From Octopus sinensis (taxonomy: Eukaryota), in the NCBI RefSeq assembly GCF_006345805.1, contig NW_021831285.1, positions 124,001-188,000 of the forward strand: DNA of 64,000 nt, written 5' to 3'. A program made the translations under genes and the position numbers. Position 1 is the stretch's first letter, and every line of letters starts with the position of its first letter. The notes beneath the pieces are model-generated. The model had not been told where the DNA came from, did not search any database, and saw only the letters and a program-made list of their open reading frames with translations. Positions 15,745-60,185 of this stretch are shown one piece after another.

Positions 15745-16584
15745 GGTACATATGTAGTAGTTGGCGGCCACTTTTTAGCGAATTTTAAAAAAACTATATT
15801 TTTTTTAGTTAAAAAAATATATAATTAAAAATAATACAATATAAAAATAATAAAATCCCACGCTACTTTAATTTAAATGAGAAGTGAGGTCAATCTATTC
15901 AATCTACCCACAAATATGTCAGAAGCTATCAATTTCATGCAATCCAGAGGAATCATCCCAAAAAAAAGTGTGTCGCAACGGACACCAAATGACTTTAAAC
16001 ATTGGCAGCTCTCCGGCTTGGAATTGCTAGGTGTGCGTAAATTTATAATATAATAGGCGGTGAAGGAATGATTGTGGAAATTGACGAAAGTCATTTTTCA
16101 AAAAGGAAATACAACAGAGGCAGAATGTTGCCTGAGCAATGGGTTTTCGGCGGAATCTGCAGAGAAACGAACCAATGCTTCTTAGAAGCAATACCTGACA
16201 GAACAATGAAGACCCTTACGAAGGCTATTCTTGAGAATGTAGAAGAAGGCACCATTCTCATATCAGACTGCTGGAAGGGTTATTCAACAAAAGATCTTCA
16301 GGATGCAGGATATCAGCACCTGCAAGTGAATCACAGATATTGTTTTGTTGATCCAACTACGGGTGCACACACCCAACATAAGAATTTGAAACAATCATGG
16401 AGTGCATTGCCTTACATTGTCCCCCAGAATCAAAACTAAAATAAAAAAAATAATTAATAATTTTGTATAAAAATAATTAATTTTTTTATAGTAATATTAT
16501 TTAAAAAAGGTAATTATTCACCAAAAAAAATATAGTTTTTTTAAAATTCGCTAAAAAGTGGCCGCCAACTACTACATATGTACC
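15745..16584 (+). mobile_element. Merlin (IS1595-like) DNA transposon, internally deleted, intronless
   Basis: ~60-bp perfect TIR starting GGTACATATGTAGTAGTTGGCGGCC. TSD AAATAAAG at 15737-15744 and 16585-16592. Empty site near 25755-25762. Motifs GGEGMIVEIDES, WVFGG, SDCWKGY, VNH, FVDP. Confidence 0.95.
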
Positions 16585-17755: not shown

Positions 17756-17788
17756 TATATTATTTTTTGTTTGAGAGTCATTTTCCAA

Positions 17789-18010
17789 TTATGCAATTCC
17801 ATCTGCTTCAACAATCGCAACTTTTTCTCATTTTTCAATCTCAAAGGAAATTCCTGTTAAAACAGACGGTCACCGTAGATCTTATAGAGGTCTTTGACAT
17901 ATTCTAATAAACAAACCACAAAACAGTTTTAGTAAAGTAATCGCGCTGGTGTTACCCTCTTTTGGATGCGTTTTTTAATCGCTTCCAGTTGCCTCTCTAC
18001 CTCGATAGTT
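17789..18010 (-). pseudogene. Decayed ABC ATPase (ABC-F-like) fragment
   Basis: With two 1-nt frameshifts it reads RQLEAIKKRIQR...LLE/VKDLYKIYGDR/VLTGISFEIEK*EKVAIVEADGIA, resembling an NBD N-terminus up to a degenerate Walker A. Cut off next to the MITE. Duplicate at ~26958-27180. Confidence 0.5.
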
Positions 18011-18483
18011 CTTTTAGGACCTCAATGTCATTTTCCGATGTCAGCCCTTTTCCAATCAAGGTTTTGATGTAAAACGGATGGAAGCCTATTTCTTGATCTT
18101 CCTCTAAAAGATGAGGAGTGTAAAAGTATTTCATCGGAGGACATTATTAAAAAATTAATATTCAAAAAATCATTAATCGTTTGAGAATGTAAATATATGT
18201 GAGATAAATAAAAAATTCTATTATATTTTTGCAGAAAAACAGAACAGCCAGAAACTTTTATCACTTTTCCTATTCACAAAAACTGCTGTCGAAATGTAAA
18301 CGAACCCATCCATGCCACAAGCGACCCTAGACTTAGCAATATAAAGACTCTATATCGACTCAAAGGCTCGGGACACTTTTTTCTTGTAAAAAATGAAATT
18401 AATATTTCGGATCAATTAATTATTGTGTTGAATATTAATCTTATTTATAATTCAAAAATAAAATACATTTGGCTCCTGTTTAG

Positions 18484-20791
18484 ATGGTTCGTTCGTCATC
18501 AATTTGCAAAGTAAATGAAATTATAATGAATATGGAAAATTTACTAAGCTGCAACCTCTGGTAGTTACAGGCTTTAAATTTTTAGTTCTAATTACTTGTT
18601 GAAGGCAGTCATTATTCACTGTGGACATTCATTTTGCCAGTATTGAGTTATATATAGTTCATATAGCGAGTGTGTTGACATGCCAGCTGACCACCTTGAC
18701 TATTACTGTCCTGTCTGTTCCCACAAATACACGCACAAGTAATCAGTGGTCATGTTTCAGTTCTGCCTGGAATGACGTAATCATTTCTGATTTGGCAGCA
18801 AAATTGCAGAAAATTAAAAAAACTGTGAAAGAAGAAATCAAAGGAAAATGTTTTGTCTTTTTATATTGTTAGCATTCAAGGCTGAATTATCATCACTTCC
18901 AGTTATAAAAAGAAATAAAGTGATCAAATGCACTAAAAATAATTCAAAAAAACTACACGAGGTGGAAAACTCTCACAATCAATCACTCAATGACACTTTG
19001 ACCAATCAGAAAGACAGTCAAATTAGCTATTTGGGCACAATTCCTATGGGCAGTAAAAATTGTTACAAAAATTATAAAAACCCAATCGTCGTCAGGAATG
19101 CAACTTTAGACGATTGGATTGATTCCACTAATCACAACTCGACTGTCCAAGCCGATGAAAACTCTCACATTTTCCACTCATTGACCAACGAAGAATCCCG
19201 TTTTGAAAATTTGAGTTTTCCAAACAACAAACAGACTGATTTCTCCTCTGTTATACATGTTGACTCTGTCTCTTCTCGTTTTGAAAATTTGAGTTTTCCA
19301 AGCCACAAACAGAAGGTTGTCTCCCCTGTTATATATAATGACTCCGTCTCTTCTCGTTTTGAAAAATTGAGTTCTCCAAACAACAAACAGACTGATGTCT
19401 CCACTGTTATACATGATGACTCCGTCTCTTCTCGTTTTGAGAATTTGAGTTCTCCAAGCAACAAACAGAATGATGTCTCCACTGTTATACATGATGACTC
19501 CTCTCTTCTCGTTTTGAGAATTTGAGTTCTCCAAGCAACAAACAGAATGATGTCTCCACTGTTATACATGATGACTCCTTCTCTTCTCGTTTTGAGAATT
19601 TGAGTTCTCCAAGCAACAAACAGAATGATGTCTCCACTGTTATACATGATGACTCCTTCTCTTCTCGTTTTGAGAATTTGAGTTCTCCAAGCAACAAACA
19701 GAATGATGTCTCCACTGTTATACATGATGACTCCGTCTCTTCTGGACAGAAGATCTTGGAATTAGTTGATGAGTCCTTCAATAAGGAACTTACTCTTGTC
19801 ACTACCGACAACTTTGATTCTCAAATGGGCAATGGAATGGGAATAGAGGACATGTCTCAAGACCTGTTTGAATCCGACTCCCAAAATGGGGGACTGTGAG
19901 AATATATAGTTCTAATTATAGAGAAATAAACCACGATGTATTAGAAACGGTTTTCGTCACTTCCACCTCTCCTCGGACGTCTGATCACAAGTACGCTGAC
20001 TCTCAGACCACTCCGAGTTCAGTGGGGAAGGAGAACTATTCCTTGGTCTCCTCTGGTCTCGGTTCTGAGATTGTTGTAAGCTTTATATGTCCAGATTATT
20101 TAAAATAGCAACAAATTCTCCATTTTTCAGACTTTTTTGGAGTGAGTTATAGCACTAGTTTTAATGCGAATGTGACATCCCATGTGGTCGTTGAAGGTCG
20201 GCATTGTGACCTTATTTTGTCCAGGTTCCTCTGGACTGTGCAGTCGTACTCTCAAATACTTGAATGGAGTGGCACAGGGTTGCTGGGTTGTCGACTCAGC
20301 CTGGGTTATTGACAGTCTTGTACACAAAAAATGGATTTCTGAGGTTGAACTGGTCTGTTTGGAATTCGAAGGAGATTTATGAAGTTATCGGAGACACTGA
20401 TTTCGGGAAGCTGCATTATGGGCCAAAGAAGAGTCGGGTTGATAGCAAAAGGTTGTTTGAGGGGATGGAAATATGCTGTGTTGGGAGTTTTTCCATGATT
20501 TTGTTGGGTTTGTTTGTTGCGGGGATTTGTAGAGGACTTGAATTGTCTCGTCATGCTTGCTGGTGCAAGTTTGGGGGATTTTTCGAACATGTCCAATTCG
20601 TTTCGAAAGTCGGTGGTTGTTGTTGAGGTCATCGACGAGTTCATTTTGCCGAATTTGATTCGTACGTGGTTTTGTGTATTTTAGGCTATCGTGACGAAGG
20701 CAGGGTTCATTTGGTTGTTCTGGAATGGCTATTGGATTCCATTTCACTCCATCAACTCAGGCCGTTTTCTGAATATTCACTCGATTTGTAG
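18484..20791 (+). CDS. BRCA1: BRCA1-like protein (RING + tandem BRCT), ~682 aa after correcting one 1-nt deletion near 19500
   Basis: Ten GT-AG introns: 18561-18585, 18640-18666, 18739-18760, 18850-18872, 19896-19921, 20076-20108, 20197-20224, 20344-20371, 20508-20532, 20662-20684. RING CNLC...CGHSFCHEC...CPVC. BRCT motifs VSSGL, SRTLKYLNGVAQGCWVV, GPKKSR, LFEGMEICCVGSF, EWLLDSI. Confidence 0.92.
19205..19743 (+). repeat. 78-bp (26-aa) coding tandem repeat in BRCA1, 7 units
   Basis: Units start at 19205, 19283, 19361, 19439, 19516, 19594 and 19672; consensus ENLSSPSNKQNDVSTVIHDDSVSSRF. The second BRCA1 copy has 4 units. Confidence 0.95.
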
Positions 20792-21472
20792 TATTTATTT
20801 TAAAATGATTTATTTGGTAAGAGCTCGTCGAGGAGACATTTATTAGGTTAGGATGTCTACCGTCGTTAATTTGATAAAGATTTGTAAAGATATTTGTGTT
20901 TCCCGCGCTGGTCACAAGCAGGATGGTGACTTGTGTATACTTAACAGGTCGATTTACACATTTTGACATTAAATTAAAAACGAAAATAATTTGATATAAA
21001 AAGGGTTTAGCGTCATTTTAATTAAAAAATGATATTTTTAAAAGATGTTATATAATCTTAGTTTTTCTTAAAAATGCCACTGAATACCAAAATCTTGTAA
21101 ATCTACTGCTCCGACAATTAGAATTGACTACATTTAAATTCCAAAAATACAAACTTATAAAAAACCAAATCAAATCGTGAAAATTGATGATTAGTATATT
21201 TGCTATTTACAATTCATAGTCTTTATCTGTTGGAACAGAATAACAAAGACACACTTTTTTGGACTGAAGTCGTTTATTTAATGAAAAGATAAGAAAATAA
21301 GTAGAATATTGCAGACTTGAGGGTGAAAGAAAGGATTTGGCCTATTTTATGCAGAAATGAATTGCTGAATAAACTCTGCGTCCTGAGGAAAATGGTTAAT
21401 GCAGCAGCACGTTCGGGATGAAGAGTGTGAGTAATGAGGTGGACCCACCTTTTGATTTGAAAGAGGAGGCAG

Positions 21473-22110
21473 TGTAGAAAGTGAGTTTTTATAAAAAGTT
21501 GTAAATAAAACGAAATAAAATTTTTCGTTTCGTTTAAATTATTTTTATCATTTTCATTTTATGTATCACTATTCACAATTTTCATGTTTATTGGTTCTTC
21601 AGATCTTTTTTTATTTTAAAACAATTGATATGAAGACATTTTCAAATTCTGATAAACATTATGAACGGTAGTGGTACTAATACAATTTTTCTTGTAATCG
21701 TTTTGAATATTTTTAATTCTGCACATGTTTACACGCGTACTCATTTTGTGGCGTTTTTTATAGTGTGTGTTTAATAAGAGCGAATTGCAAATACTCCTTG
21801 ATACTGTTCCCTATGTGGCCAAAGCTTCAACTATTTATTTTAAAATTTTAGCAAGTATCGAGACATTAATATTTTTGATTACATTTTTTCCATATCTTGA
21901 AACATTTCAATCATTATTATGTCTTATAATCATTTCATCTCCTACGTTTATATTTTCCTCATCATATCGCCATTTTCTTTATTTTCTCTCCGATTTTTGA
22001 AGATTTTCCAGAATCTTCATATTTTTCTGTTCATTTTCCGAGCATTCATTTTTTTCGTAATTATTTCTTTTGGGTCAGTTCCATCGAATGCCATTAATGC
22101 GTTTATTTTA
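21473..22110 (-). mobile_element. Decayed Ginger-like (integrase) element, 3' fragment
   Basis: KWRYDEENINVGDEMIIRH resembles the integrase C-terminus at 47617. Terminus begins TGT at 21473. Duplicate at 30406-31040. Confidence 0.45.
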
Positions 22111-25100
22111 TCAATGTTAGGAAAATGGGTAAAATTTTCTTTTCTGATTTGAGATATCCATAATTCCAACTTCATTATGAAAGCATTTATTGAACTGATC
22201 ATATCGATAATATATCTATTCTTTCCCTGTAATTCTAAACTGAGTTCATTCAGTTTGCTGGTAATATCGGTTAAAAATGCCAAGTTTATTAGCCAATCAG
22301 GATTTTCAAGAAAATGCCAATTCTTGTTGTTTTCTTTAGAAAATTCTTTAATGTATGATAATAATTCTATGAAACGACTGAGAATTAATCCCTTGCTTAA
22401 CCATCTTATGTCACAATGTAAAGGTAGATCGCCATAGATTGCATCGACTTGTTCTAGAAAAAGTCGAAATAATCTTCTTTGTAGGGGCTTGGCTCGGATG
22501 GAATTAATAATTTTAACTGTTGTCTCCATAACATAGTTGAAATTTAACATTTTCCCACATAATGCATGTTGGTGAATGATGCAATGATATGATAAAAATT
22601 TCGGAAAATGTTCATCTTTCCGACAAAATGCAATAAATCCATTTTGATTCCCAATCATTGCAAGGGCTCCATCTGTTGTTATGGATACAAGTTTCTTCAT
22701 TAACGGTAATAATTCGAATGATAACAAAAACGTTTTGAAAGAATTATAAATATTTTCACCAGTTGTTCTTTCTTTCATAGGTATAATAGCAAATAACTCT
22801 TCCTTGACAGTTAGATCATGGAAGATTAAACGGGAAAATACACATAGATGGGCGATATCAATAGCATCGTTTGATTCGTCAAACTGTAGAGAAAAACACG
22901 AACATGCGTAAAGATCCTTTTTTAACTGCGAAAGAAGATTTTCAGAAATGCTTTCAGCCCTTCTGACAATTGACTGTTTTGAGAGCTGAAGCTCTTTGAT
23001 GCAATTTGAAATTTCCTGTTTATTTTTCATACCATCAAATAGTGAATCGGCAGCTTCTAAAAAACAAGATTTTAAAATTTCCCCATCAGTGAAAGGTTTT
23101 TTGTGTTTTACGACTAGACTAGAATCTAGACTCTAGATTTACATAGATTGTATAATCTTTCATTTGAGATTTTCCTTGCCCAGAAGATTCCGATCAATAT
23201 ACGGATTTGATTCCTATGAAATGGATCTAACTTCACTAAATCATTTTTGAGGTTCTCCATGTTCCAAAATTATAGAGCAGGACTTTTATGTGGATACAAA
23301 AGTTGAATGTTCAACGTCAAGGAACAACGGATTGTGACATTTTTGACGAAATGAGAAAATATGCCTTGATGGTATCCTTCAAGCGTAGTGTGGATACTCC
23401 GCTTAGCGACTTTGAGGCAAACTCGACTGAGACAATCGTTTTTTTGCCAGAACAGAGAATAAAGACTTTCTATAATGATGATAATTAGATGTTTTTGGAG
23501 ACGGTGAACAATGCAAAGAAGCCATGTTAAGTTTCATATCAAGACCTCTTTCCTTAACCACATAACATCCATTTAGAATTTCCACATCCAGCTGAAGTGG
23601 CGAGAGTTCTCAGCTGAGTCGTTCTAATGCACTTCATGAAGCGACTTTTAGAAGTTTACTATCCCAGAATTGATAAAATATATTGTTACCTCTATAGAAT
23701 TATCAGAATATTCAATATTCTGTAATTGAAATAATTTATTTTAAAAATAAGAATCCTCGAATATGTAATTAGCATCATCTTAAAAAAATTAATTTTAATG
23801 TAAACTAATAATTAGACGACTCTCAAATTTTTGCTTCCCGAGTTCCCCATAACTCCACTTTGATCTTCCCCGCCATGATCCTCAATCTCCTCCTGGGGCA
23901 TGCAGTCTCTGGGCCTCTTAAGGGACTTGCTGATCTTCATAGAAAAATTATATTTCCGCCAGTCCCTATTTACGGAATTTGCAGAGTCCAGAATTTTACT
24001 GAAGCCATGTTTGTACTCGACAAACATGCTCTCCAGAGTGGCCTTCAGCGTTACAGTCTGGATGTAAGACCGAACACGTTTTTCAATCCCAAGGAGCTCC
24101 ATGTACTTGCGGTAGATTGTTGAAACGATTCCATCCCACGTAGTGACAATTGGCACAATCTTCACCTTAGCCTTGTGAATCAGTTGTAATTCACTAGCTA
24201 AAATGTCGTATTTGTGCAGTTTTTCTACTTCCACTCTTTAGGTTATCTATTGAAGTCACACCCACTTCAATAAGCCATATTAGGTTCTCTCTTTTGTCGT
24301 AGAGGAAAATGTCGGGTTTGTTATATTGAATTTTCAACTCTGTTGGAATTGTTGTATCAACTCGTATTTCTGCCAAGGTGTTGCACATAATACTCTGGAC
24401 AGAGTGATTTTTCAGTCTTCTGGATTTTTGAATCCAAATCTACCGCACAAGTGCATGTGGATGCATCTCACAATTTCATTGTGTCTTCTCGTATAATCCG
24501 AATTAAGCATCCTGTTGCATCTAGTTGCCATGTGATCAACCGTCTTATTGGAAGATTTACAGTGTGAACATTTTGAATTAGGGTCTCTGAAAAAAATATT
24601 CCTGTCTTGAAGAAATGAAAACATAGCTTCAGATTTAGGAGATATATTTCCTTTCTTAAGCCATGTTGAAGACGATTGAATATCAAAATTGTTATCATCA
24701 AGGGATTCAAATAGCTTCGAGTGAAGTGTTTTCTTCTTGATATTGGACAGTAAGGAATCAATCTGCAATCTACTCAGTGATTTGGTTATCTCTCCTTGGG
24801 TGTTCGTTCCATATTTACAATGCAGGAATTCTGTGATCGTGGCCATATGGGACTTTCTTTTCTGCTCGGCCCACAGAATTGCTGCCTTTCTTGGGGAGAT
24901 TAACTTTCGCCTCTCCAGATTTTCACGAAAGTCAAACAGCATTTTTTCCGACCTGAAGGTAATCGAGGCAAGCCCTCTTCCAAGTTTATCCCTCGGCAAA
25001 TATAGCACTCCTTACAGGCTGGTTTCATATGAATATTTAGATCCATTAACAGCTTCCTGACAAATTTGTCAATTTCATCAAAAGCGGACGGTTCCAAATC

Positions 25101-28100
25101 CAGAAGGCCGATATAATAATTGTACAAAGATAAAGCATGTTCATTAATTGCCTTAAACAAATTCACCGAATTTAGTTTCGTCTTCGACAATCTTTCGATA
25201 CGTTGTTGAACCTCAATCCGTAAATTTTTCAAAGTCGATATCAGCTGGGGAGGTCCAGTGAGTGAATTTCCAGAGGAATAAGGACGACCATGAACATTTA
25301 AATCTACTCTTCCATTACAATTTTCACTATTATTTTGAGTAGATGCGTCCATAGATATGGTTATTCCATTTTGTAAACCAACCATCCGTACACCACAAGA
25401 AATTTTTTTTCTTGTTGTAATTAGCATAATCATAGCCAACTAAATTATCTACAATGACTTTGTTCGGATCATACTACCTTTTTCTGTAGTCAGCAGCTAA
25501 ACAATTGAATATACACATGTGTTTTCTAATTCATGTGTTAAACTGATAATTTTTTTGGAAAAGTGAATTTATATTATTAAAAAACGTTCACAATCAATTT
25601 ACACTTTTTTATTGTAGTGGGACCGAATAAACGCTACGAAACTCGACATCCCATCCGGAGAATCTACTTCCATGTGGAGTCCGTATGTGATGAGATGTCC
25701 CTTTTTAGAATTTTTTTGTTTTTTTTTTAAAAAAAATTAAGTATATAAAGACCAAATAAAGTTTTAATTAATTAGTATGACCCTAGGATAGCGTGTGAAT
25801 TTCCGCGGACAATTGCACACGAAATCCTCTGAAAGAGCCACGACGTCTCCCGCGGATCACCTGTTTTTTTGTGGTGATTAGACCACCCAATCTTCGAATG
25901 AACGAAAAACTCTCTGTTCCAAAGACTCCGGAAGTCTCCACAGCGATCGGCTGGAAAAGATATCTGTCTGCCAGGAAAGAGTATTTCTTTTTCTTCAACT
26001 CTTCAGAACGTTTTGCAGCAGAGCCAGGAAAGGATGCCGAACTTCCGAATGAAGAAGGTCCAAACGTGTCAGGGCAGGTAAAATCCAAACAAGTGCTTTC
26101 CCTCTCGTGTACGGGTAGATGGTTACGCCGTCTGGGCGTTTGCCATCCCCTCTATCGAGACCAGCTGGTTCGAGTTGAGAGTGGAATCCGGCAGCGTCCA
26201 TGGCCCTTTTGATGATGTCATTGGCGGCGGAATGTCGGGGAAAACGACCGGCACTACGAGTGCAAGAAAGTGCGTGCCTTCCCAATGGACCAATCCTCTT
26301 TCCACATTTGCAGGGGTGTGGGGTGCACATCGGTAAGCCGAGACGTAGACATAGGCCGATCCTAATGGTATCGTCGTCCAGTTTACAGCCGGTAGACGCA
26401 ATAGGACAAGCGCTTATCCAGGAGCCAGAATTGGGTTGTGCACCCGATCTGAGACATATGATCGTTCTTGGTCCATGCACAGTTCGATAACTCTGTAAGT
26501 CTCCCTGCACCAGATTTCGTCCCAATGTCTCTGTGAAGATTCCACTTCGGGGAGTCTCAGACCAAGGCTTTTTAGAATTAGCATATCAATACAGTCGAGT
26601 AAGATGATGTCCGGCTTGCTATTCTCGATATACTCCTATGGTACAGCGATACAAATAAAAAACGGAACACTCATTTTCTCGATTTTTTTCTATTGAATGC
26701 ATGATTTATTTTAACAAAAATAGAATTTTTAGAAGACAAACATAACTTTAGCCTTAAAAAAATAAAAACAACTTATATTTCGGACCGTAATTAAATCCAG
26801 TTTTGTCCAAACAAAATAAAAAAGAGAACAAAATAAAATTCTCTATTTTTACAGAGTTATAAAAAAAGCATTATATAGAAAGAAATTGAGAAATTGGCTG
26901 TTCCGTTTTTTATTTGTATCGCTGTATATTATTTTTTGTTTGAGAGTCATTTTCCAATTATGCAATTCCATCTGCTTCAACAATCGCAACTTTTTCTCAT
27001 TTTTCAATCTCAAAGGAAATTCCTGTTAAAACAGACGGTCACCGTAGATCTTATAGAGGTCTTTGACATTCTAATAAACAAACCACAAAACAGTTTTAGT
27101 AAAGTAATCGCGCTGGTGTTACCCTCTTTTGGATGCGTTTTTTAATCGCTTCCAGTTGCCTCTCTACCTCGATAGTTCTTTTAGGACCTCAATGTCATTT
27201 TCCGATGTCAGCCCTTTTCCAATCAAGGTTTTGATGTAAAACGGATGGAAGCCTATTCCTTGATCTTCCTCTAAAAGATGAGGAGTGTAAAAGTATTTCA
27301 TCGGAGGACATTATTAAAAAATTAATATTCAAAAAATCATTAATCGTTTGAGAATGTAAATATATGTGAGATAAATAAAAAATTCTATTATATTTTTGCA
27401 GAAAAACAGAACAGCCAGAAACTTTTATCACTTTTCCTATTCACAAAAACTGCTGTCGAAATGTAAACGAACCCATCCATGCCACAAGCGACCCTAGACT
27501 TAGCAATATAAAGACTCTATATCGACTCAAAGGCTCGGGACACTTTTTTCTTGTAAAAAATGAAATTAATATTTCGGATCAATTAATTATTGTGTTGAAT
27601 ATTAATCTTATTTATAATTCAAAAATAAAATACATTTGGCTCCTGTTTAGATGGTTCGTTCGTCATCAATTTGCAAAGTAAATGAAATTATAATGAATAT
27701 GGAAAATTTACTAAGCTGCAACCTCTGGTAGTTACAGGCTTTAAATTTTTAGTTCTAATTACTTGTTGAAGGCAGTCATTATTCACTGTGGACATTCATT
27801 TTGCCAGTATTGAGTTATATATAGTTCATATAGCGAGTGTGTTGACATGCCAGCTGACCACCTTGACTATTACTGTCCTGTCTGTTCCCACAAATACACG
27901 CACAAGTAATCAGTGGTCATGTTTCAGTTCTGCTGGAATGACGTAATCATTCTGATTTGGCAGCAAAATTGCAGAAAATTAAAAAAACTGTGAAAGAAGA
28001 AATCAAAGGAAAATGTTTTGTCTTTTTATATTGTTAGCATTCAAGGCTGAATTATCATCACTTCCAGTTATAAAAAGAAATAAAGTGATCAAATGCACTA

Positions 28101-31040
28101 AAAATAATTCAAAAAAACTACACGAGGTGGAAAACTCTCACAATCAATCACTCAATGACACTTTGACCAATCAGAAAGACAGTCAAATTAGCTATTTGGG
28201 CACAATTCCTATGGGCAGTAAAAATTGTTACAAAAATTATAAAAACCCAATCGTCGTCAGGAATGCAACTTTAGACGATTGGATTGATTCCACTAATCAC
28301 AACTCGACTGTCCAAGCCGATGAAAACTCTCACATTTTCCACTCATTGACCAACGAAGAATCCCGTTTTGAAAATTTGAGTTTTCCAAACAACAAACAGA
28401 CTGATTTCTCCTCTGTTATACATGTTGACTCTGTCTCTTCTCGTTTTGAAAATTGAGTTTTCCAAGCCACAAACAGAAGGTGTCTCCCCTGTTATATATA
28501 ATGACTCCGTCTCTTCTCGTTTTGAAAATTGAGTTCTCCAAACAACAAACAGACTGATGTCTCCACTGTTATACATGATGACTCCGTCTCTTCTCGTTTT
28601 GAGAATTTGAGTTCTCCAAGCAACAAACAGAATGATGTCTCCACTGTTATACATGATGACTCCGTCTCTTCTGGACAGAAGATCTCGGAATTATTTGATG
28701 AGTCCTTCAATAAGGAACTTACTCTTGTCACTATCGACAACTTTGATTCTCAAATGGGCAATGGAATGGGAATAGAGGACATGTCTCAAGACCTGTTTGA
28801 ATCCGACTCCCAAAATGGGGGACTGTGAGAATATATAGTTCTAATTATAGAGAAATAAACCACGATGTATTAGAAACGGTTTTCGTCACTTCCACCTCTC
28901 CTCGGACGTCTGATCACAAGTACGCTGACTCTCAGACCACTCCGAGTTCAGTGGGGAAGGAGAACTATTCCTTGGTCTCCTCTGGTCTCGGTTCTGAGAT
29001 TGTTGTAAGCTTTATATGTCCAGATTATTTAAAATAGCAACAAATTCTCCATTTTTCAGACTTTTTTGGAGTGAGTTATAGCACTAGTTTTAATGCGAAT
29101 GTGACATCCCATGTGGTCGTTGAAGGTCGGCATTGTGACCTTATTTTGTCCAGGTTCCTCTGGACTGTGCAGTCGTACTCTCAAATACTTGAATGGAGTG
29201 GCACAGGGTTGCTGGGTTGTCGACTCAGCCTGGGTTATTGACAGTCTTGTACACAAAAAATGGATTTCTGAGGTTGAACTGGTCTGTTTGGAATTCGAAG
29301 GAGATTTATGAAGTTATCGGAGACACTGATTTCGGGAAGCTGCATTATGGCCAAAGAAGAGTCGGGTTGATAGCAAAAGGTTGTTTGAGGGGATGGAAAT
29401 ATGCTGTGTTGGAGTTTTTCCATGATTTTGTTGGGTTTGTTTGTTGCGGGGATTTGTAGAGGACTTGAATTGTCTCGTCATGCTTGCTGGTGCAAGTTTG
29501 GGGATTTTTCGAACATGTCCAATTCGTTTCGAAAGTCGGTGGTTGTTGTTGAGGTCATCGACGAGTTCATTTTGCCGAATTTGATTCGTACGTGGTTTTG
29601 TGTATTTTAGGCTATCGTGACGAAGGCAGGGTTCATTTGGTTGTTCTGGAATGGCTATTGGATTCCATTTCATTCCATCAACTCAGGCCGTTTTCTGAAT
29701 ATTCACTCGATTTGTAGTATTTTATTTAAAATACGATTTATTTGGTAAGAGCTCGTCGAGGAGACATTTATTAGGTTAGGATGTCTACCGTCGTTAATTT
29801 GATAAAGATTTGTAAAGATATTTTGTGTTTCCCGCGCTGGTCACAAGCAGGATGGTGACTTGTGTATACTTAACAGGTCGATTTACACATTTTGACATTA
29901 AATTAAAAACGAAAATAATTTGATATAAAAAGGGTTTAGCGTCATTTTAATTAAAAAAATGATATTTTTAAAAGATGTTATATAATCTTAGTTTTACTTA
30001 AAAATGCCATTGAATACCAAAATCTTGTAAATCTACTGCTCCGACAATTAGAATTGACTACATTTAAATTCCAAAAATACAAACTTATAAAAAACCAAAT
30101 CAAATCGTGAAAATTGATGATTAGTATATTTGCTATTTACAATTCATAGTCTTTATCTGTTGGAACAGAATAACCAAAGACACACTTTTTTTTGGACTGA
30201 ATTCGTTTATTTAATGAAAAGATAAGAAAATAAGTAGAATATTGCAGACTTGAGGGTGAAAGAAAGGATTTGGCCTATTTTATGCAGAAATGAATTGCTG
30301 AATAAACTCTGCGTCCTGAGGAAAATGGTTAATGCAGTAGCACGTTCGGGATGAAGAGTGTGAGTAATGAGGTGGACCCACCTTTTGATTTGAAAGAGGA
30401 GGCAGTGTAGAAAGTGAGTTTTTATAAAAAGTTGTAAATAAAACGAAATAAAATTTTTCGTTTCGTTTAAATTATTTTTATCATTTTCATTTTATGTATC
30501 ACTATTCACAATTTTCATGTTTATTGGTTCTTCAGATCTTTTTTTATTTTAAAACAATTGATATGAAGACATTTTCAAATTCTGATAAACATTATGAACG
30601 GTAGTGGTACTAATACAATTTTTCTTGTAATCGTTTTGAATATTTTTAATTCTGCACATGTTACACGCGTACTCATTTTGTGGCGTTTTTTATAGTGTGT
30701 GTTAATAAGGCGAATTGCAAATACTCCTTGATACTGTTCCTATGTGGCCAAAGCTTCAACTATTTATTTTAAAATTTTAGCAAGTATCGAGACATTAACA
30801 TTTTTGATTACATTTTTTCCATATCTTGAAACATTTCAATCATTATTATGTCTTATAATCATTTCATCTCCTACGTTTATATTTTCCTCATCATATCGCC
30901 ATTTTCTTTATTTTCTCTCCGATTTTTGAAGATTTTCCAGAATCTTCATATTTTTCTGTTCATTTTCCGAGCATTCATTTTTTTCGTAATTTATTTCTTT
31001 TGGGTCAGTTCCATCGAATGCCATTAATGCGTTTATTTTA
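22111..31040 (+). repeat. Second unit of a direct tandem segmental duplication (first unit 4916-22110)
   Basis: Collinear copies of the hAT ORF, RTE fragment, R4-like, CRE-like, MITE, ABC fragment, BRCA1 and Ginger fragment. First unit 17195 bp minus three TE insertions and three 78-bp repeats gives ~8931 bp, versus 8930 bp for this unit. Confidence 0.95.
27651..29717 (+). pseudogene. BRCA1: BRCA1-like second copy with several 1-nt deletions (pseudogene or consensus errors)
   Basis: Same exon-intron layout as copy 1 and four repeat units. At least six single-base homopolymer shortenings break the frame. Confidence 0.8.
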
Positions 31041-31574
31041 TTTTCATCTTGTTTTTTTAATGTGACGGTCACATATAATATACTAGTTTATTAAAAAAGA
31101 AACTAATTAACTAAGTAATTTTTCTAACCAAGTCCAGAGCCTTTCGAAGTGACACATATAAACCAATTTATTTACGAAACCAAAATTTAATTAAGGTTAA
31201 AATATTTAATTAGGACTTTCAATCCTGATTGGTAGTCTCTCTTCTCCTTTTAGGAGAAGAGTCTGCTGCTTGTTCCTCTTCATTCTCTATCTCTGCGTCA
31301 GTTGTTGTGCGTCTTTTATCTTTGAATGGAGTGTCCTGGCGGCATGCCATTTCTACTAGTTGATCGGTCGCAGAGGCATATTCCTCGCCAGTTATCTCAT
31401 TCCATGCTTTGTGTCAATTATCATGCTTCTAGCGTCCTTTTGAGCACAATCGATTGGATGTATGTCATTGTAAATTTTCAATATATAGTTTATCCATATA
31501 ATTTTTGAGCATCTTGTGAACAACACCATCCCAGGTCAGAACACGGGATAATTTTAAACTTGCATTTTTTTTTT

Positions 31575-34500
31575 GGTTGAGGTGGTGACGTGCCTCTCTT
31601 GCACTAATGTCTATTAAGCATTCGAAACAATCTAATGAACTAACAATCCTTACCTTCAATGTCAGAGGTCTGAAAACCGTGGCTAAGAGGCACCTTCTAT
31701 GTACTGATCTCGAAAAATACCAGGGCTCTATATGCTGTCTACAGGAGACTAAAGTAAAACACGGACTTGACGAAATACACGGAAATTATCGCCTAATACT
31801 GCTTCCCTCAGAATCTATACATTATGGACAAGGATTCGCAATACACAAGAACCACACCTCCAGACTATATCGATATTGGAAAGTCAGCGATAGGATCAGC
31901 GTCTTACAACTACGTACAATCTCAAGCAGCAAGTCGAGGAGACTCACGTCAATTGTCAATGTCTACGCGCCACACAGTGGACGTATTCAAAAAAATCCAG
32001 AAGAACTTGATATCTTCTATGAGGAATTAGGAAGGACATTAACAGACCTCGGTTCTTCGTACTTTCTGTTTGTTGCCGGGGACTGGAATGCGAAAGTTGG
32101 AACCCGTAAGGGAAACGAAAGTTTTATTGGCCATCACGGAAGAGGAATCAGAAACTATCCAGGAACTGTTCTAGCTGAATTCTGTCGGGTCTTTGACCTA
32201 TTCCTATGCAACACCGGTTTCCAGCATCCCGCGCGTCACAAAACGACGTGGACTGGCCAACGACCCTCACCGACCGCAGGGTCCGTCAACATTTTCAACC
32301 AAATTGACTACATCGTCTGTCGAGCCGGGGAAAAATCGCTTCTCCGAGACTCAAGGTCTTATGGAGGTGCAGCTACTTACAGTGATCATAAAATTGTCTC
32401 TGCCAAGTTTGCTATGAAGACATCAATTGACCTACGACGAAGGGGGCCCAACGCTGATGTAAGGATAAGGCATAAAATCGAACAACTGTGCTCATCTACG
32501 CTGGTCAGAGACAACTACCAACTGTCAATCATGAAATCTCTTGGAAACATAAATGCCGAACTTTCTCCAGGAGGTGCCTGGGCGGAGACAATGAAAGGGA
32601 TCCTCTTGGCAGCCGACGAGGCAATTGGCCTTCGGTCGCAAGTACTATGCAACAAAGGTATACACTCTGATCTCCCTGCCCTCATCAAAGAACAAAAGGA
32701 GCTAAGACTACAACTGGAAAACACATCTGATCCGAAGAAGAAACAAATCTTACAGAATAGACGTTCATCTACCCAAAAAAAATCAAAATGTTGAACAAGA
32801 CAAACTTCACTAACAAACTCGACTTAATAGCTGCAGGAATTGAACAGCTAAAGGACTCTTCAAAAATGTTTACGGCAATCCGCCTACTCAACAGGAAAAA
32901 ACAAACTAACAAACTCAAAATCCATGACAGCAATGGAAGATTCATCACAAATCCCAAAGAGCAGGCTGAATATATAGCCTCGTATTTCGAGAGTATATTA
33001 ACCGCTCACGGAGAAATATCCGATTACACCAGCGGATACACCACTCATCTCAGCCTACCTATCACCACCGGTGAAGTATCAACTGCAATAGCCAAACTTA
33101 AAAATGGCCGCTCCTCTGGACCGGATGGAATAAATTCAGAACTGTTTAAATACGGACCGCCTGCACTAACAGACAAACTGGCGGAGCTACTCAATGGTAT
33201 GTTTATGAAAAAGGAATTCCTCGGTCTTGATTCCGGATTATTAATACCGATCCAAAAGCCTAACAAGCAGGCTGGGCCTGTCGAAAATCTACGCCCTATA
33301 ATCTTGCTAAACACCTTACGGAAACTTTTGGGATTAGTTACACTGAACCGAATAAGAGAACAAGTGGACAACTATCTATCCCCGAGTCATAGTGGATTTA
33401 GGACAGGAAGATCCACCGCCGATGCTGTCTGGGCCCACAAGTGGTACTGCGCTATCACCCAGAGATACAAAAGTGCAACAACAGTCCTGGGAATAGACCT
33501 GTCTAGGGCCTTTGACACGGTACGCCGTGGTCTACTCCTCAAAATACTGGAACAATTCCTGGACCCTGACTCTGTCAATATGATAAGAGTACTACTATCG
33601 AACACAAAGCTCAAGGTGCGGGTCGGCACGGCGTTTTCCCGTGAATTCACGTGCAACGTCGGTACCCCTCAGGGAGACGCCCTCTCGCCGTTGCTATTCG
33701 TGATCTATCTGGAGACGGCACTACGAGACCTTCGAAAATTCTATGCTGGCAATATCGTCGAAATTGTATATGCAGATGACGTCGACTTCGTGTCAGACGA
33801 CAAATCGGCCTTACTTCGACTCCTTGAAGTGGCACCTGCTGAGCTGAACAGATGGTTCCTTAAAATGAACGTTGGAAAAACCGACATCGTTGAAATCATG
33901 AGGATGGAGAGCAGCTCAAGTGAAGCCTGGCGCAAAACGAACAAACTCGGTTCTCTACTTGGGGACGGCCATGATATTGTCAGAAGAAAGGCTCTCGCTT
34001 GGGCCACGATGAACAAGATAAAGAAAGAGTGGATCGGCAAACGACGACTCTGTACGTCACTTCGTCTGAGGATGTATGAAGCCTTTGTCAAACCAATCCT
34101 GACATATAATTCGGCGACCTGGGGAATGTCTAGTACTGAACAACGTGGACTCGATTCTTTTCACCGCAGGCAACTTAGATCCCTACTGGGATTGAACTGG
34201 CCTATAAGAATCAACCAGGAATCGCTATACAATAGATGCAGAACTGGCCCTCTGAGTGTGGAAATCGTCATATGCGGTGGAGGTTATTTGGCCATATTCT
34301 ACGAATGGACATGCTTGCCCCAGCTAACATAGCAATGGAGGGCTACTTCCTGAAAGAGGGATCGAGCTTCCGTGGACGTCCACGTGTTACGCTGCCGGAA
34401 ACACTTGACGGAGACCTGAAATGTGTGAAGAAAAGGCTAAGGAGTGGTGAGGATCTGGACGAGCTGAGGAAACTCGCTCACGACAGAGGAGGTTGGAGGA

Positions 34501-34584: not shown

Positions 34585-35580
34585 ATAATTTCGTTTAGAG
34601 TAGTGAAAGTGCATTTGCAAGGATCATATTGTGAAGTTTCTCAACTTCCACTTGTTTAGCGGTCCTGAGATGTTGCCACTTCGATTAAGGTTATTTACTT
34701 TTTAATTTTGTCATAAACAAAGATATCCGTTTATTGAAGTTGACTTTATTTTCTGTTATAATTGACGTGTCAACTCTAATTCCCACATTTTGAGTTGACA
34801 ATATCGACTGAACTGAATGAGTCTTTAATTTCCTGTTCTTTTTAATTCCATACATTCGACAAATATGAATATGGACACATTTAACCACTTCGTCATGTCT
34901 TCGGAGGTAATCGCTATTGAGCATTTTACCACACTGAGTGGCCAGATGATCAACAGTTTGTTTACTTTTTTACAATGATTGCATAACGGCCTCGTGCTTG
35001 CAAAAAACAAATTTCTATCTTGCAGAAGACAGTATAATGCTTCACTTCGGGGGCCATTATTTCCTTTGGCTAACCATTCTGAGGAAGTAGAAAGATCGAC
35101 ATTTGATTCATCCAAGCATTTGAACATAACAGAGTGTAGTGACTTGAACTTTATTTTGTTCAGCAAATATTTTTTCTGAATGTCTTTGAGAAAATTAGTA
35201 TTTATGCTTTCTGTGTCAGCAATAGCGTATTTAGAGGTAAGAAATCCTGCGATTGTAGCCAAATGGCATTTCTTTGTTTTAATAACTCGCAGAATCCCCG
35301 ACCTTCGCAAACACACAGCCGAGTGTTTTTCCAAGCTTTTAAGGAATTGCATGAGTATTAATTCGCTCTTGAACTAGATGGAGGCAAGTCCTCTTCCAAA
35401 AGTTTTGCGGTCTAAATACAGCCTTTCTTTATTTGCAGGCAGGAGATGTAACTTGAGTGTCGTGAGCAGTCGACGTATTTGTTTATCAATGTCATCAAAT
35501 TCACATGGCTCAATATTAATTAGCCCAATATAATAATCATATAGGGACAATGCATATTCATTTATGGCATAGAATAAATT

Positions 35581-36565
35581 GGTACTTTTGTCGAAGTGGT
35601 CGCAGTTTTTTTAGAAGATAATTAAAATTAATTAATTTTTTTAGTGAAAAATAGATTATTTAATTTATAACCCTCTATCAAATATTTAAATGGTTATTAA
35701 AATTATTTAAAAATTTATTTAACCAATTTAGTCATTTTAGTACGCGGCATCCAAATTCCAGGACTGTAGAAGGAATTTATGTCTTTTACAATCTGTGCAA
35801 AAGATTCCTTATAGTTCTGTATTTGTTTTCGCCACATAAATTCTGAAAAAATAACTAACTAAAAAACCTGCGAAATAAGATCCCAGAGATGTCTTACAGC
35901 TCCTCTTTGAGCTTTATTCTTGCATTTTGCACTTCCCCACATTCGTTCTACTGTCTGGGTGTGCACTCCCGTCGTTGGATCCACAAAGAATTTTCTGAAT
36001 ATATTATATTTCCTTACTTATGGTTAACGGTTTCGTGTGGTAGCCGTTTTCAACCAATTGATCAGTTGAATACCCTAAATGTTAATCAAATAATGCTAAC
36101 CTTTCCAGCAGTCACTATAAATAATGCTTCCCACCTCGACATATCGAATTACTAGACTGAGCAGTGTTTCTCTGCTCCTATCCGCGACTGGTTGCAGAAA
36201 ACACTGTTTGGTGGCTCGACAAATACCACCGAAGACCCACTGTTTTGGTAAAACTCTTCCAGAGTTGTTTTTCCGTTTGGAAAACATACTCTCGTCTACC
36301 TCCACAATCATACCAGGACCACCTGAAATAAACATTAATAATACCAATTTTGCCGTCAGATCTTTTAACAAGTGCGTCCACACAGACTTCACGTAAAAAC
36401 ATAGCCCAATCGACATATGTATGTTCACCCCAATTGTATTCGTGATGAAGCCATTTGAAGGTATGCCTATCGTAACTCATAAGTATAGTAGGCGGCGATG
36501 ACATCCTCAAATGGCAATCTACAATTCTCTAACCAGGTATCTAGAATTATTTCGACAAAAGTACC
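35581..36565 (-). mobile_element. Merlin DNA transposon with four micro-introns in its transposase
   Basis: 15-bp TIR GGTACTTTTGTCGAA. TSD AATAAATT at 35573-35580 and 36566-36573. Introns at 36323-36344, 36075-36100, 35995-36017 and 35843-35867; removing them restores KIGGPGMIVEVDES, DCWKGY, NHKKFFVDP and YFAEFMWR. The copy also has a few 1-nt frameshifts. Confidence 0.92.
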
Positions 36566-38355
36566 AATAAATTCACCGAATTCAACTTTGTTTTTGACAA
36601 CATAGTTATTCTTTTTTTACATTCTCCATTATTGAATTCATAACTTTATTCTTGGCTATCGTGGTCCAACAGGAGGCGAATCGAGGAGGCCCAACAAAGG
36701 GCCCTCAGATTAACCGATCGTTGGTCACATGATAGCCAACGCCCCGGTCCAGCCTCTCTGGAAGACCTCATCAAGCTGAACCTGGGCCCGTCAGCGACTG
36801 CTCCGCCAAAAACGGCCCGCCGCCCTGTGCGATCTTGTGTGGGCTCGTGGAAAGACCACCGAGCGAGGATGAGGTCCCTGGTTGAGTGCATCGGGATCAC
36901 GTGACATTTGTTCGGTTTTTAGCGTGGTCTTGGTGATTTAACAAATAAATAACTTTATTCTTGAGGACATTACTTCCTCCATCTTCAAATACGTCCAAAT
37001 AGCGATATCCATTGATTCCTTCCAAAGTCTCGCAGCATGATAAAGATTTGACATTAGAGGCCGATTTTTCAGAGTTCATGTCAAAAAATTCTTTAACAGC
37101 TTCCATCATTTTAATAACAGTGTCCTCTTTAAGAGCAAATATCTTTAGATCGTCAATAAAATATAGGTGATTGGTAGAAAATGTCAACATATTTAGATCC
37201 TACTGATTAATTTGCAATTTGGGAAATTTAGAGTTCAGGATCCTGCTTAGGGGATCCATTACCATAACAAATAGCAATGGGGATAATGAATCTCCTTGCA
37301 AAATGTAGATTTACTTTCCAGATGTAGATTTACTTTCCACTTCTTGACTATACTTTTCACAAAGTTAATAATCCAGAGTGGAATTCCAGAGCTGTCCAAT
37401 ATGTGGAATAAAAATTGGTGATCAACCGAGTCAAAGGCTTTCTTTACATCCACCCAAGTAGAGTACAGACTGTTTCCATACTCCTTGTTCAAGCATTGAT
37501 TAATAAGTGCTTGCTCTTTGGCACCCTGACATTGCTTTCCGGTTCCGAGTTGATTGTCTGAAATCAGTCCAAATCCATCCACAAAGTCAAAGAGTTTAAC
37601 ATTCACACACTTCGTTACAAGCTTGTACAAAGTTGGCATACACGTTATAGGACGTAAATCCTTTGGATTCTCACAATCATCCTTTTTTGGAATCAAGTAA
37701 GTTAATCCCGTGTAAAACCAACTCTCGGGCATGTAATCACCCTTGATTATCCGGATTACTTCATTACACAAGAATTCATGTAATGATTTCATTTTCTTGA
37801 TGAAAAAGTTTTACGTTCCATCACATCCGCACGCCTTCCAATCAGGCATTTGAGCATATCTTTAACCAACTCATTTGTGAATTAAGGTTCCATAGCTTCA
37901 CCACCGGTAGACCTCACATCCACACAATTATACGAAACGTGATCCATATTTTTCTTTCTCCAGACGTCCTCCCAGAATAACAAACACTCATAATCATCAA
38001 AGCCATATAAGGTTACTTCATTATTCGATGATAAGTTTCGGTAAAACCTTCTGCGGTTTAATTCAAAGCACGCATTGTCTTTTCGGAACTCTTTCCTCGA
38101 GTTATAAATTGATATTTGTTTCTCTTTAATTCTGATTAGATCATTCATTAAAGCCTCAATTCTCATTAGCTCTCCCTTTTTAGATTTCTTATATCCGTAG
38201 CGGCAGAGAATATCCATTACATTTTTCTTTTCAGATTGAGGTAATGCTTGTCTCGAAAAGGAATTCACTAATTTAATTTCAGCTGCTAATTTCGAAATTT
38301 TGTTTTCTGTATTTTCCAACCATGTGCTTTTTGTTTTATGTCTTATAGTTAAGGC

Positions 38356-48297: not shown

Positions 48298-50883
48298 CAC
48301 TCCTCGCCAAAAAAAATGATTCAAAATTCATATTTAGTTTTTCTTTGAAAATCTTATAAATATTCTAATTTCAAAAAACTTAGTAGATTAGTTGTAATTA
48401 TTATGATTTAATTTTAATAAAATATTTGCTAATTACATTAATTTGGAAAAATTAAAAGCACAACACACAATATGTTAGTATATGTCAGTGACAAAAAAAA
48501 TGATTCAAAATTAAAAACTTTGTAATTAATATCTGGTATTTCCTCCTTTTGCCATAAAAATATCCCAACAACGTTTTTTCATAGATAAAACAAGTTTTTC
48601 AATATAATATTTAGGAATATTTTCCCAAATATGAAGAAGTTCCTGCTTTAATTCTTCAGCATTTTTCAAATTAATTTTACTGAGTTCCGCTTTTATATGA
48701 GCCCATAAATGCTCAATTGGATTTAGATCAGGTGACTGGGATGGCCAGTCTAGTGTTTTTATATTTTCTTTATCAAAATAATTCATGATTAACTTCGCTG
48801 TATGACACGGTGCATTATCCTGTTGAAAAACAAAGTCATTAAGTCCCATTTTTGCAACTGATCTCGGTAGGCTGTTGACTAAAAGATTTAAATATTTTGC
48901 AGAATTCAATGTTCCGTCAACAAAAACTAATTCTCCGACGCCGTTAAAAGAAAAACATCCCCCATATCATGATTTTCCCTATTTTTTGTTTTCAAGCCAA
49001 ATCAACCTGTTCCAAATTTCACTGTTGTTGAAATATTTTTGGAATTAAGTTGTTCACCGCTCTTCCTATATACTATTTTTCGAGTTTTGTTTGGATTGGC
49101 GTAAAAAATGCATTCATCTGAGAAAATTGTGGTTTTCCATTTTTCATCAGAAATGGCAAGAAATCTTTTCGTTATTTCTAATCTTTTTTTAGTGTGTCTT
49201 ATATTCAAAAATGGCTTATTTTTGTGCGATTCGTCCAAATATACCATTTTCATTAAGATTTCTTATAACTGTTCTTGAGAAAATTGCTTTATTGGTTAGT
49301 TTCGTCATTTCACTTGAGATCTCTTTAGATGTTTTTGTTGGATTTTCTTCAGAATACTTTATCAATTCTTTCAAATCATTTTTATCAAGTATTTTTGGGC
49401 TTCCAGATTTAGGACAGGAAGATCCACCGCCGATGCTGTCTGGGCCCACAAGTGGTACTGCGCTATCACCCAGAGATACAAAAGTGCAACAACAGTCCTG
49501 GGAATAGACCTGTCTAGGGCCTTTGACACGGTACGCCGTGGTCTACTCCTCAAAATACTGGAACAATTCCTGGACCCTGACTCTGTCAATATGATAAGAG
49601 TACTACTATCGAACACAAAGCTCAAGGTGCGGGTCGGCACGGCGTTTTCCCGTGAATTCACGTGCAACGTCGGTACCCCTCAGGGAGACGCCCTCTCGCC
49701 GTTGCTATTCGTGATCTATCTGGAGACGGCACTACGAGACCTTCGAAAATTCTATGCTGGCAATATCGTCGAAATTGTATATGCAGATGACGTCGACTTC
49801 GTGTCAGACGACAAATCGGCCTTACTTCGACTCCTTGAAGTGGCACCTGCTGAGCTGAACAGATGGTTCCTTAAAATGAACGTTGGAAAAACCGACATCG
49901 TTGAAATCATGAGGATGGAGAGCAGCTCAAGTGAAGCCTGGCGCAAAACGAACAAACTCGGTTCTCTACTTGGGGACGGCCATGATATTGTCAGAAGAAA
50001 GGCTCTCGCTTGGGCCACGATGAACAAGATAAAGAAAGAGTGGATCGGCAAACGACGACTCTGTACGTCACTTCGTCTGAGGATGTATGAAGCCTTTGTC
50101 AAACCAATCCTGACATATAATTCGGCGACCTGGGGAATGTCTAGTACTGAACAACGTGGACTCGATTCTTTTCACCGCAGACAACTTAGATCCCTACTGG
50201 GATTGAACTGGCCTATAAGAATCAACCAGGAATCGCTATACAATAGATGCAGAACTGGCCCTCTGAGTGTGGAAATCGTCAATATGCGGTGGAGGTTATT
50301 TGGCCATATTCTACGAATGGACATGCTTGCCCCAGCTAACATAGCAATGGAGGGCTACTTCCTGAAAGAGGGATCGAGCTTCCGTGGACGTCCACGTGTT
50401 ACGCTGCCGGAAACACTTGACGGAGACCTGAAATGTGTGAAGAAAAGGCTAAGGAGTGGTGAGGATCTGGACGAGCTGAGGAAACTCGCTCACGACAGAG
50501 GAGGTTGGAGGAGGCTGGTTCAAAGGATTGTTTTTAATGCTGCACGAGTAAAATTATAACTAATATGATTCTACGTATGTTGCAAATAATAATAATAAAG
50601 TCATCCATATGCTTTTTCCTAAAATAGAGATATTAAATCATATAAAAAAAGATATTTGTATAGATAATATTTTTGAATCATTTTTTTTGTCACTGACATA
50701 TACTAACATATTGTGTGTCATGCTTTTAATTTTTCCAAATTAATTCAATTAACAAATATTTTATTAAAATTAAATAATAATAATTACAACTAATCTACTA
50801 AGTTTTTTGAAATTAGAATATTTATAAGATTTTCAAAGAAAAACTAAATATGAATTTTGAATCATTTTTTTTGGCGAGGAGTG
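48298..50883 (-). mobile_element. Tc1 (DD34E-type) transposon with ~213-bp IR/DR-type TIRs, a 28-nt intron and a nested RTE
   Basis: TA on both flanks. TIRs at 48298-48510 and 50671-50883. Motifs IFSDE, VKFGT|GKIMIW, FQQDNAPCH, WPSQSPDLNPIEHLW. Intron at 48979-49006. Confidence 0.95.
49406..50599 (+). mobile_element. 5'-truncated RTE copy, nearly identical to 33395-34584
   Basis: Intact 322-aa ORF 49591-50559 and (TAA)n tail. The 5' junction has GATTT microhomology with the Tc1 target. Confidence 0.95.
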
Positions 50884-58298: not shown

Positions 58299-58299
58299 A

Positions 58300-59490: not shown

Positions 59491-60185
59491 ATGGGACCGC
59501 CTCCGCCTTTAGATTTCAGTAACCCAGACAATGTTAAGGAATATTTCAAAAGAATATACATCGAGTACAGATACTCTTGCTTTGATGAAAATGACCCAGA
59601 GGGTAATTAATACTGGCATTCTCAGGCTGTTACCGCTTGGCCACGTTCTTAGACAACATCAAAAACAAATATTCCCGGGCTGCAAGAGTATATAAAAGGG
59701 GTTGCTTTGATCTCAAACACGCCCGTTCGTGTGTCCGTTACGGGGCATATCATTTGAAGGGAATTGGAGGACTTGATCCTTCTGTTGAGGCCAGCAGAGA
59801 GTGTTTCGAGAGAGCATGTGAACTAGGGTCACTTGAGGGTTGTCACAACCTTGGATATTCCCTCATCACAGAACAAGACTCGGATGTCCAACGTGGGGTT
59901 CAAATTTTGCAAGATGCCTGTTCGAATGGGCTGCCTCGAAGTTGTATTAATCTCAGCCGCTTTTCCCTAAAAAATAACATGGAAAGTAAAGCTTTGGAGT
60001 TTGCCAGGAAAGCTTGTGAGTTGAAGGATCTGAGAGGATGCCTTCTCTTTGCTGATTTGATTGAGAAAGGTGTTGGGGAAGCTGTTGGAGGAGTCCAGGA
60101 GGCTGAGAGGATTAGGAGAATTGCTAATGAAAAATATAAACCAATCTATCGTTCAAACGAATCTTCTTTATATGGAAGAGGTTGA
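59491..60185 (+). CDS. COA7: Cytochrome c oxidase assembly factor 7 (Sel1-like repeats), 223 aa
   Basis: One 23-nt intron (59603-59625). LDF...VKEYF..I.IEYRYSCFDENDPEGCYRL...SC.RYGAY..KG.GGL...ACELG...GCHNLG. Confidence 0.92.

Follow-up and report, generated by a model that had tools for sequence, protein, structure and literature searches.

The window (the whole stretch of 64,000 nt that was analysed, to which all coordinates refer) consists almost entirely of transposons and satellites. The former comprise LINEs with endonuclease and reverse-transcriptase domains, hAT-like elements, a pogo element and two Merlins, which are here called element 1 (35581..36565; 985 bp, sense on the minus strand) and element 2 (15745..16584, plus strand). 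The only clear non-transposon gene found in the window specifies a COA7-like protein with Sel1 repeats (59491-60185, plus strand; Pfam Sel1, 35 bits; ATG at 59491). This host gene has a single intron, a 23-nt GT..AG segment (59603..59625, plus strand) located between ...DENDPEG and CYRLATF.... An HMMER search of all representatives with the COA7-like protein returned mainly multi-repeat Sel1 proteins. An internally deleted pogo/DDE_1 transposon (55215-56260, minus strand) carries a 29-nt GT..AG intron (55990-55962, minus strand) between ...YVVNK and NAWMTSRIF, so that tiny introns in this genome are not peculiar to Merlin. A possible second pogo intron, of 25 nt, follows the remnant of the N-terminal helix-turn-helix (~56163-56139). 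As neither TAA nor TAG occurs in frame in the long ORFs of the window, the genetic code in use is the standard one. For this reason a ciliate host of the Paramecium type, suggested by the size of the introns, was rejected. A microsporidian host is unlikely in view of the TTYAG 3' splice sites and the mix of transposable elements, which is of metazoan type.

Element 1 is a defective DNA transposon of the Merlin superfamily. It terminates in a perfect 15-nt inverted repeat (GGTACTTTTGTCGAA / TTCGACAAAAGTACC) which starts with GG and occupies 36551..36565 (the 5' end in sense orientation) and 35581..35595 (the 3' end in sense orientation); both elements begin GGTAC. The 8-bp target-site duplication, AATAAATT, is also perfect, with its left copy at 35573..35580 and its right copy at 36566..36573. 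A preliminary description of this DNA had drawn the element with these boundaries, inverted ends and duplication, all of which were found again. Exon 2 alone matches the Pfam family DDE_Tnp_IS1595 (PF12762) with 28.5 bits (cut-off, 27), and this domain is present in all close database homologues (52-68% identity). The D, D and E of element 1 (in VEVDES, YSDCW and TVERMW) fall in the columns that are conserved among 17 relatives. On the strength of the domain match, the DDE columns, the GG ends and the 8-bp target duplication we assign element 1, as had been proposed, to the Merlin superfamily.

The coding remnant, which is read from the minus strand, is distributed over the following exons: the remnant of exon 1 (36345..36541; ...TWLENCRLPFEDVIAAYYTYEL / HTFKWLHHEYNWGEHTYVDWAMFLREVCVDALVKRSDGKIG), exon 2 (36101..36322; GPGMIVEVDES...IIYSDCWKG), which includes the first two catalytic Asp residues, exon 3 (36018..36074; YSTDQLVENGY / HETVNHK), exon 4 (35868..35994; KFFVDPTTGVHTQTVERMWGSAKCKNKAQRGAVRHL / GSYFA) with the catalytic Glu, and exon 5 (35715..35842; EFMWRKQIQNYKESFAQIVKDINSFY...LVK) with a stop codon at 35717-35715. 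A slash denotes a break in the reading frame, to which we will return.

Between these exons lie four short segments, all on the minus strand, with the lengths and positions that had been noticed earlier: intron 1 (36323..36344; 22 nt, phase 1, in the first Gly codon of KIG|GPG; 18% GC), intron 2 (36075..36100; 26 nt, phase 1, WKG|Y), intron 3 (35995..36017; 23 nt, phase 2, NHK|KFF) and intron 4 (35843..35867; 25 nt, phase 1, YFA|EFMW). Each segment allows one GT..AG reading only. The 3' ends are TTTCAG, ATTTAG, ATTCAG and TTTCAG, respectively, the 5' signal is reduced to GTa or GTt, and internal A residues provide potential branch points. Removal of the segments restores the frame and residue-for-residue colinearity with the 17 relatives, with 0 gaps at the four sites. 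Retention of intron 2 or intron 3 brings an immediate stop, and that of intron 1 or intron 4 shifts the frame. The introns have a G+C content of 21% overall (18-23% each) compared with 41% for the exons (31-45% each). As a yardstick of host size the window offers the 23-nt intron of the COA7-like gene and the 29-nt intron of the pogo element (n=2 introns). Taken together, the unambiguous GT..AG boundaries, the restored colinearity, the low G+C content, the stop or frameshift on retention and the host-matching size indicate that the four segments are very probably spliceosomal introns. It is also true, as had been pointed out, that none of the four lengths is a multiple of three, yet the probability of this by chance is (2/3)^4 = 0.2. 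Introns this short have been reported in very few animals. The median intron length is 22-27 bp in myxobolid myxozoans and is similarly short in Dicyema japonicum (PMC13644364), while most introns of Thelohanellus kitauei measure 20-25 bp (PMC4986447).

What the preliminary description had overlooked is the decay of element 1, which is without the N-terminal part of its transposase and retains three frame breaks after splicing. These lie at 36481-36460 in exon 1, at 36045-36029 in exon 3 (between ...ENGY and HETVNH) and at 35891-35878 in exon 4 (between ...RHL and GSYFA). In the alignment with the 17 relatives each break is flanked on both sides by homologous sequence, and thus no other choice of splice sites rescues the frame; alternative splicing as a means of frame rescue was ruled out, the breaks being intra-exonic. 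Alignment with L001, L003 and L007, all of them full-length relatives, shows that the coding homology of element 1 starts at ...TWLENCRLPF, only ~25 nt inside its terminus. A deletion has thus removed the 5' untranslated region together with ~60 or more N-terminal codons, among them those of the CxxC zinc-finger region. The Zn_Tnp_IS1595-like N-terminal region is kept in all three of these relatives, and its absence from element 1 is a matter of decay of that copy. The start codon of 'MSSPP...' is non-native, and the 5' deletion may also be the cause of the short, 15-nt inverted repeat. Autonomy requires a transposase frame that is intact after splicing, and element 1 does not have one. The three frame breaks and the N-terminal deletion mark it as a dead, non-autonomous copy, and as a source neither of transposase nor of spliced transposase mRNA.

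Element 1 is inserted in the decayed ORF of a non-LTR retroelement (34600..37300, minus strand), of which the reverse-transcriptase motif QGDSLSPLLF...YFIDDLK and the C-terminal region are recognizable. If the flanks are joined and one copy of the duplication is removed, an open minus-strand reading is obtained (...KTKLNSVNLFYAINEYALSLYDYY...), which runs ...KTKLNSVNLFYAINEYALSLYDYYIGLINIEP...LYLDRKTFGRGLASI downstream of the reverse-transcriptase motif. Paralogous copies of the retroelement at 15180-14989 and 25199-25008 possess SVNLFKAINE in unbroken form (...KTKLNSVNLFKAINEHALSLYNYY...). The earlier claim of a cleanly split target holds insofar as the insertion is precise; the target itself is a decayed retroelement ORF rather than a host gene. 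That element 1 transposed as DNA with its introns aboard, as the preliminary description had already proposed, is shown by its inverted ends, by the target duplication and by the empty site as reconstructed. The same retroelement remnant holds a 291-bp insert (36655-36945) of 57% GC between two copies of a 15-bp direct repeat, ATAACTTTATTCTTG (36640-36654 and 36946-36960). This resembles a retroposed, SINE-like insertion, although it lacks a poly-A tail and matches nothing in Rfam.

Element 2 is an internally deleted Merlin with a perfect 62-nt inverted repeat, and its target duplication of 8 bp reads AAATAAAG (15737-15744 and 16585-16592). It matches DDE_Tnp_IS1595 with 39.7 bits and retains a remnant of the zinc finger (CRNGHQM...WNC). 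The internal deletion extends from ...AWNC to just before GGEGMIVE, and the third catalytic block is degraded and unrecognisable. Elements 1 and 2 share 63.5% amino-acid identity over exon 2 and nucleotide similarity over only ~50 nt; they belong to different Merlin families. The window also contains two duplicated segments (13719-22111 and 23732-31041; 98-99.4% identity), in which a tandem array of 78-bp period accompanies retroelement ORFs. Only the former segment harbours element 2, and the latter provides its empty site with a single AAATAAAG at 25754..25761. Since the empty site lies in so nearly identical a segment, the insertion of element 2 is recent, and a source of Merlin transposase was active not long ago.

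The preliminary description regarded element 2 as continuous at three of the positions at which element 1 has introns. This is correct for position 2 (DCWKGYS) and position 3 (VNHRYCFVDP), but at position 1 there is a 26-nt GT..AG candidate (16031..16056, plus strand) with the same codon and phase as intron 1, and the junction of the internal deletion lies inside it. Its removal joins the ATG at 15916 in frame to GGEGMIVE.... Position 1 reads IIGGEG unspliced and LLGGEG spliced, and the consensus of the family is KIGGEG.

The DNA of relatives was retrieved by exact-protein look-up and locus search, and ~12 of them were inspected at the DNA level. The possibility that the intron positions are ancestral across Merlins had been raised at the outset; in none of these relatives is one of the four positions, where covered, interrupted by an intron. 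Uninterrupted at all four are the frameshifted L001 from a bioreactor metagenome, L002 (Logan SRR14454025), L003/L004 (ENA metagenomes ERZ27277143 and ERZ23500236), L008 from the spider Trichonephila clavata, which consists of a single 528-nt exon, and L007, L009, L010, L011, L013 and L014. L005 and L006, for which coverage is partial, are uninterrupted at the positions covered. Several relatives have introns elsewhere. L003 contains three, of 45 nt before KIGG, 39 nt in FLVMV|VPNR and 38 nt at FK|VNH, and L002 has two of them, the first and the third, in common with it (42-45 nt before KIGG; at least 38 nt at FK|VNH). The 51-nt intron of L010 has its position in common with the second of L003 (FLV.V|VP.R), and that of L012 (57 nt) is situated inside KRK..NAGR. 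The introns of L002, L003/L004, L010 and L012 are canonical (GTAAGT...TTTTAG; 38-57 nt) and belong to eukaryotes in metagenomes. On this evidence, introns in Merlin transposase genes are common and lineage-specific.

The introns of element 1 are private among the sampled relatives. Because its four intron positions are intronless in all of them, the comparison supports a lineage-specific gain, and most likely the introns were acquired after the split from these relatives. The preliminary description had also favoured gain in this lineage, on the basis of element 2. The conclusion holds, resting now on the ~12 relatives, whereas element 2 is weak evidence on the direction of change: it belongs to another family, is internally deleted, is uninformative at position 1 and falls into a polytomy with element 1. 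The latter was observed in a maximum-likelihood tree of 52 Merlin proteins, in which the two elements and a clade of 12 members form a polytomy (SH-aLRT 88). The mapping of intron positions on a Merlin phylogeny had been suggested earlier; this tree does not order the three branches, and hence does not distinguish gain from loss between the two families of the window. At the deepest level of Merlin ancestry gain is trivial, since Merlin derives from intron-free bacterial elements of the IS1016/IS1595 type (PMC8101967). Only one copy of the element 1 family is present within the 64-kb window, and the protein searches yielded no other. Those conducted with the element 2 ORF, the LINE reverse-transcriptase ORF and the exon 2 ORF gave nothing above 68% identity and no match of a query to itself, an exact search with the 25-nt terminus of the element against metagenome contigs gave no match, and a locus search for further copies of the family gave distant relatives only.

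Three other readings of these data have to be considered. Element 1 is a pseudogene with three further frame-disrupting lesions, and in such a setting the four segments might be small AT-rich insertions and no introns at all. However, all four run from GT to AG, fall within a 5-nt range of length and have the size of host introns, and the removal of every one restores frame and colinearity with 0 residues lost or gained. The true lesions look unlike them, being single frame slips within exons, and we regard this explanation as very improbable. The introns could also predate the divergence of the two Merlin families. In that case introns 2 and 3 would have disappeared from the lineage of element 2, for instance when it recombined with a reverse transcript of spliced mRNA, whereas intron 1 would have stayed. 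The GT..AG segment 16031-16056, which agrees with intron 1 precisely in codon and phase, and the in-frame connection of ATG 15916 to GGEGMIVE on its removal, speak for such a history, as do the position of both elements in one unresolved clade (SH-aLRT 88) and the abundance of active reverse-transcriptase sources in the window. In CACTA transposases, moreover, loss of introns has prevailed over gain, with reverse-transcriptase-mediated loss as the commoner route (PMC4158355). Nevertheless, the unspliced IIGGEG fits the consensus at least as well as the spliced LLGGEG, the 'gtgtgc' of element 2 may be leftover zinc-finger coding sequence, and an in-frame join has a one in three chance. Nor are the two families closer to each other than to intron-lacking elements of other organisms. 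We consider both the greater age of the introns and their loss by this route unlikely.

A further reading concerns introns 1 and 3, which are situated 7 and 11 nt downstream of the first and third introns of L003. They may be homologous to these introns as found in L002 and L003, having slid by 7 and 11 nt and shrunk to host size, so that only introns 2 and 4 would be new. L003 is the most similar relative (69% identity), it and L002 carry introns before KIGG (42-45 nt) and at FK|VNH (at least 38 nt), and the chance of two of four introns falling so near to them is, as a rough estimate, ~0.04. Against this, the positions differ and so do the phases (0 versus 1, and 0 versus 2), and the same-clade sequences P0001, P0174/L007, P0003/L008, P0179 and P0002/L009 are intronless at both places. 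Intron sliding beyond a few nucleotides is generally regarded as rare. Homology through sliding is thus quite improbable in our estimation. A stronger form of the gain hypothesis, in which all four introns arose de novo at ~22-26 nt within the mobile element and in an animal lineage known for extreme intron shortening, is put forward only tentatively, and we would sooner doubt than assert it.

Merlins form a superfamily of DNA transposons in eukaryotes, with bacterial relatives in the IS1016/IS1595 group (Feschotte 2004, summarised in PMC8101967), and are defined by inverted repeats of 24-462 bp that start with GG and by target-site duplications of 8-9 bp (PMC8101967). Element 1 resembles them in its DDE_Tnp_IS1595 domain with D, D and E, its GG ends and its 8-bp duplication, and in sharing 52-69% identity with Merlin-type proteins from spiders, nematodes, rotifers and microsporidia. 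An N-terminal zinc finger is found in the full-length relatives and, as a remnant, in element 2. Element 1 differs in the length of its inverted ends (15 nt, compared with 62 nt in element 2 and the reported 24-462 bp), in the loss of the N-terminal domain and the broken frame, and in having its coding region split by four introns of 22-26 nt at positions unseen in the sampled relatives.

The myxozoan Thelohanellus kitauei is reported to possess 179-185 DDE_Tnp_IS1595 sequences, together with hAT, Tigger/pogo and LINEs (PMC8101967, PMC4986447). This mixture of Merlin, hAT, Tigger/pogo and LINE elements is similar to that of the window, and the introns of this species are mostly of 20-25 bp. 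On the other hand, PMC8101967 and PMC4986447 describe no introns in Merlin elements (the word 'intron' is absent from PMC8101967). Proteins of T. kitauei were not among the named matches, the best identity of any match being 68%, and it is therefore improbable that the window comes from the annotated assembly of this species. The most likely host is a myxobolid myxozoan or a dicyemid. The introns of myxobolids and Dicyema (PMC13644364) are comparable to those of element 1 in length (22-26 nt), GT..AG boundaries, GTa/GTt 5' signal and internal A residues, and the host gene of the window has a 23-nt intron. Those of element 1 differ in that they reside in a mobile element rather than in conserved host genes, and at lineage-specific rather than animal-conserved positions. 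Spliceosomal introns whose number varies by gain and loss are known from the DNA transposons of the CACTA superfamily (PMC4158355). These belong to a different superfamily, occur in plants and have introns of normal size, and their history is dominated by loss, with one putative gain.

The explanation that we consider likely is that element 1 represents a decayed, non-autonomous copy of a Merlin family whose transposase gene contains at least four genuine ultra-short introns, in a host with introns of ~20-30 nt. An intact master copy would give rise to transcripts from which the U2-type machinery of the host removes the tiny introns, and the product would be a DDE transposase estimated, by comparison with the full-length relatives, at ~300 residues. 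This enzyme would bind to the inverted ends, which begin with GG, cut the element out and insert it at a target cleaved with an 8-bp stagger. With DNA as the intermediate, the introns would be carried by every copy, including defective ones moved in trans. Element 1, from which the 5' region and the DNA-binding N-terminal part are gone and in which the frame is broken three times, could have been mobilised only in trans, and would have landed in this manner in the retroelement ORF. That splicing occurs in vivo and that an autonomous master exists are points which we infer, as we do the timing and mechanism of the gains. Tiny introns in element 1 are what is expected of a DNA transposon in a tiny-intron genome, and do not make it a new kind of element.

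The interest of such a family lies in the fact that transposon families are multi-copy and datable, so that introns private to one of them offer a rare handle on the timing and mode of intron gain. In size, the introns of this host seem to reach, or nearly reach, the minimum reported for animals. Provided that intact and expressed copies exist, the family could show whether introns of 22-26 nt were born at that size or shrunk to it, and might reveal a dependence of the transposase on the unusual splicing of the host; the single dead copy demonstrates only that the family exists. Should de novo gain be true, the Merlin family, and the pogo family with it, would constitute a datable, multi-copy record of the origin of tiny introns, and the near-coincidence with introns of the relatives would point to preferred sites of gain. 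For annotators, the lesson is that intron-blind gene callers will fragment transposase genes in tiny-intron genomes.

The remainder of the window contains a number of other repeats. A young LINE (31607-34332, plus strand) has ORFs with endonuclease (PF03372) and reverse-transcriptase (PF00078) domains, and a second, partial copy (49406-50595, plus strand) is 99.8% identical to it. Its best database relatives show only 49% identity overall, and partial matches from Octopus sinensis reach 55-57%. The hAT-like element is present in two copies (4916-6502 and 22111-23697) that are 99.5% identical and give a weak DUF4371 match; an open stretch of 371 residues is located at 23132-22020. Rfam and tRNA scans of the window returned nothing beyond a borderline Rfam tRNA match at 58239-58315 (minus strand; 29.5 bits against a gathering threshold of 29), which is not called by ARAGORN and may be a tRNA-derived repeat. 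Lastly, satellite arrays are found at 8748-11336 (95-bp period, 27 copies), at 19199-19743 and 28364-28672 (both of 78-bp period), and at 61399-63999, where 16 copies of a 161-bp period run past the end of the window.
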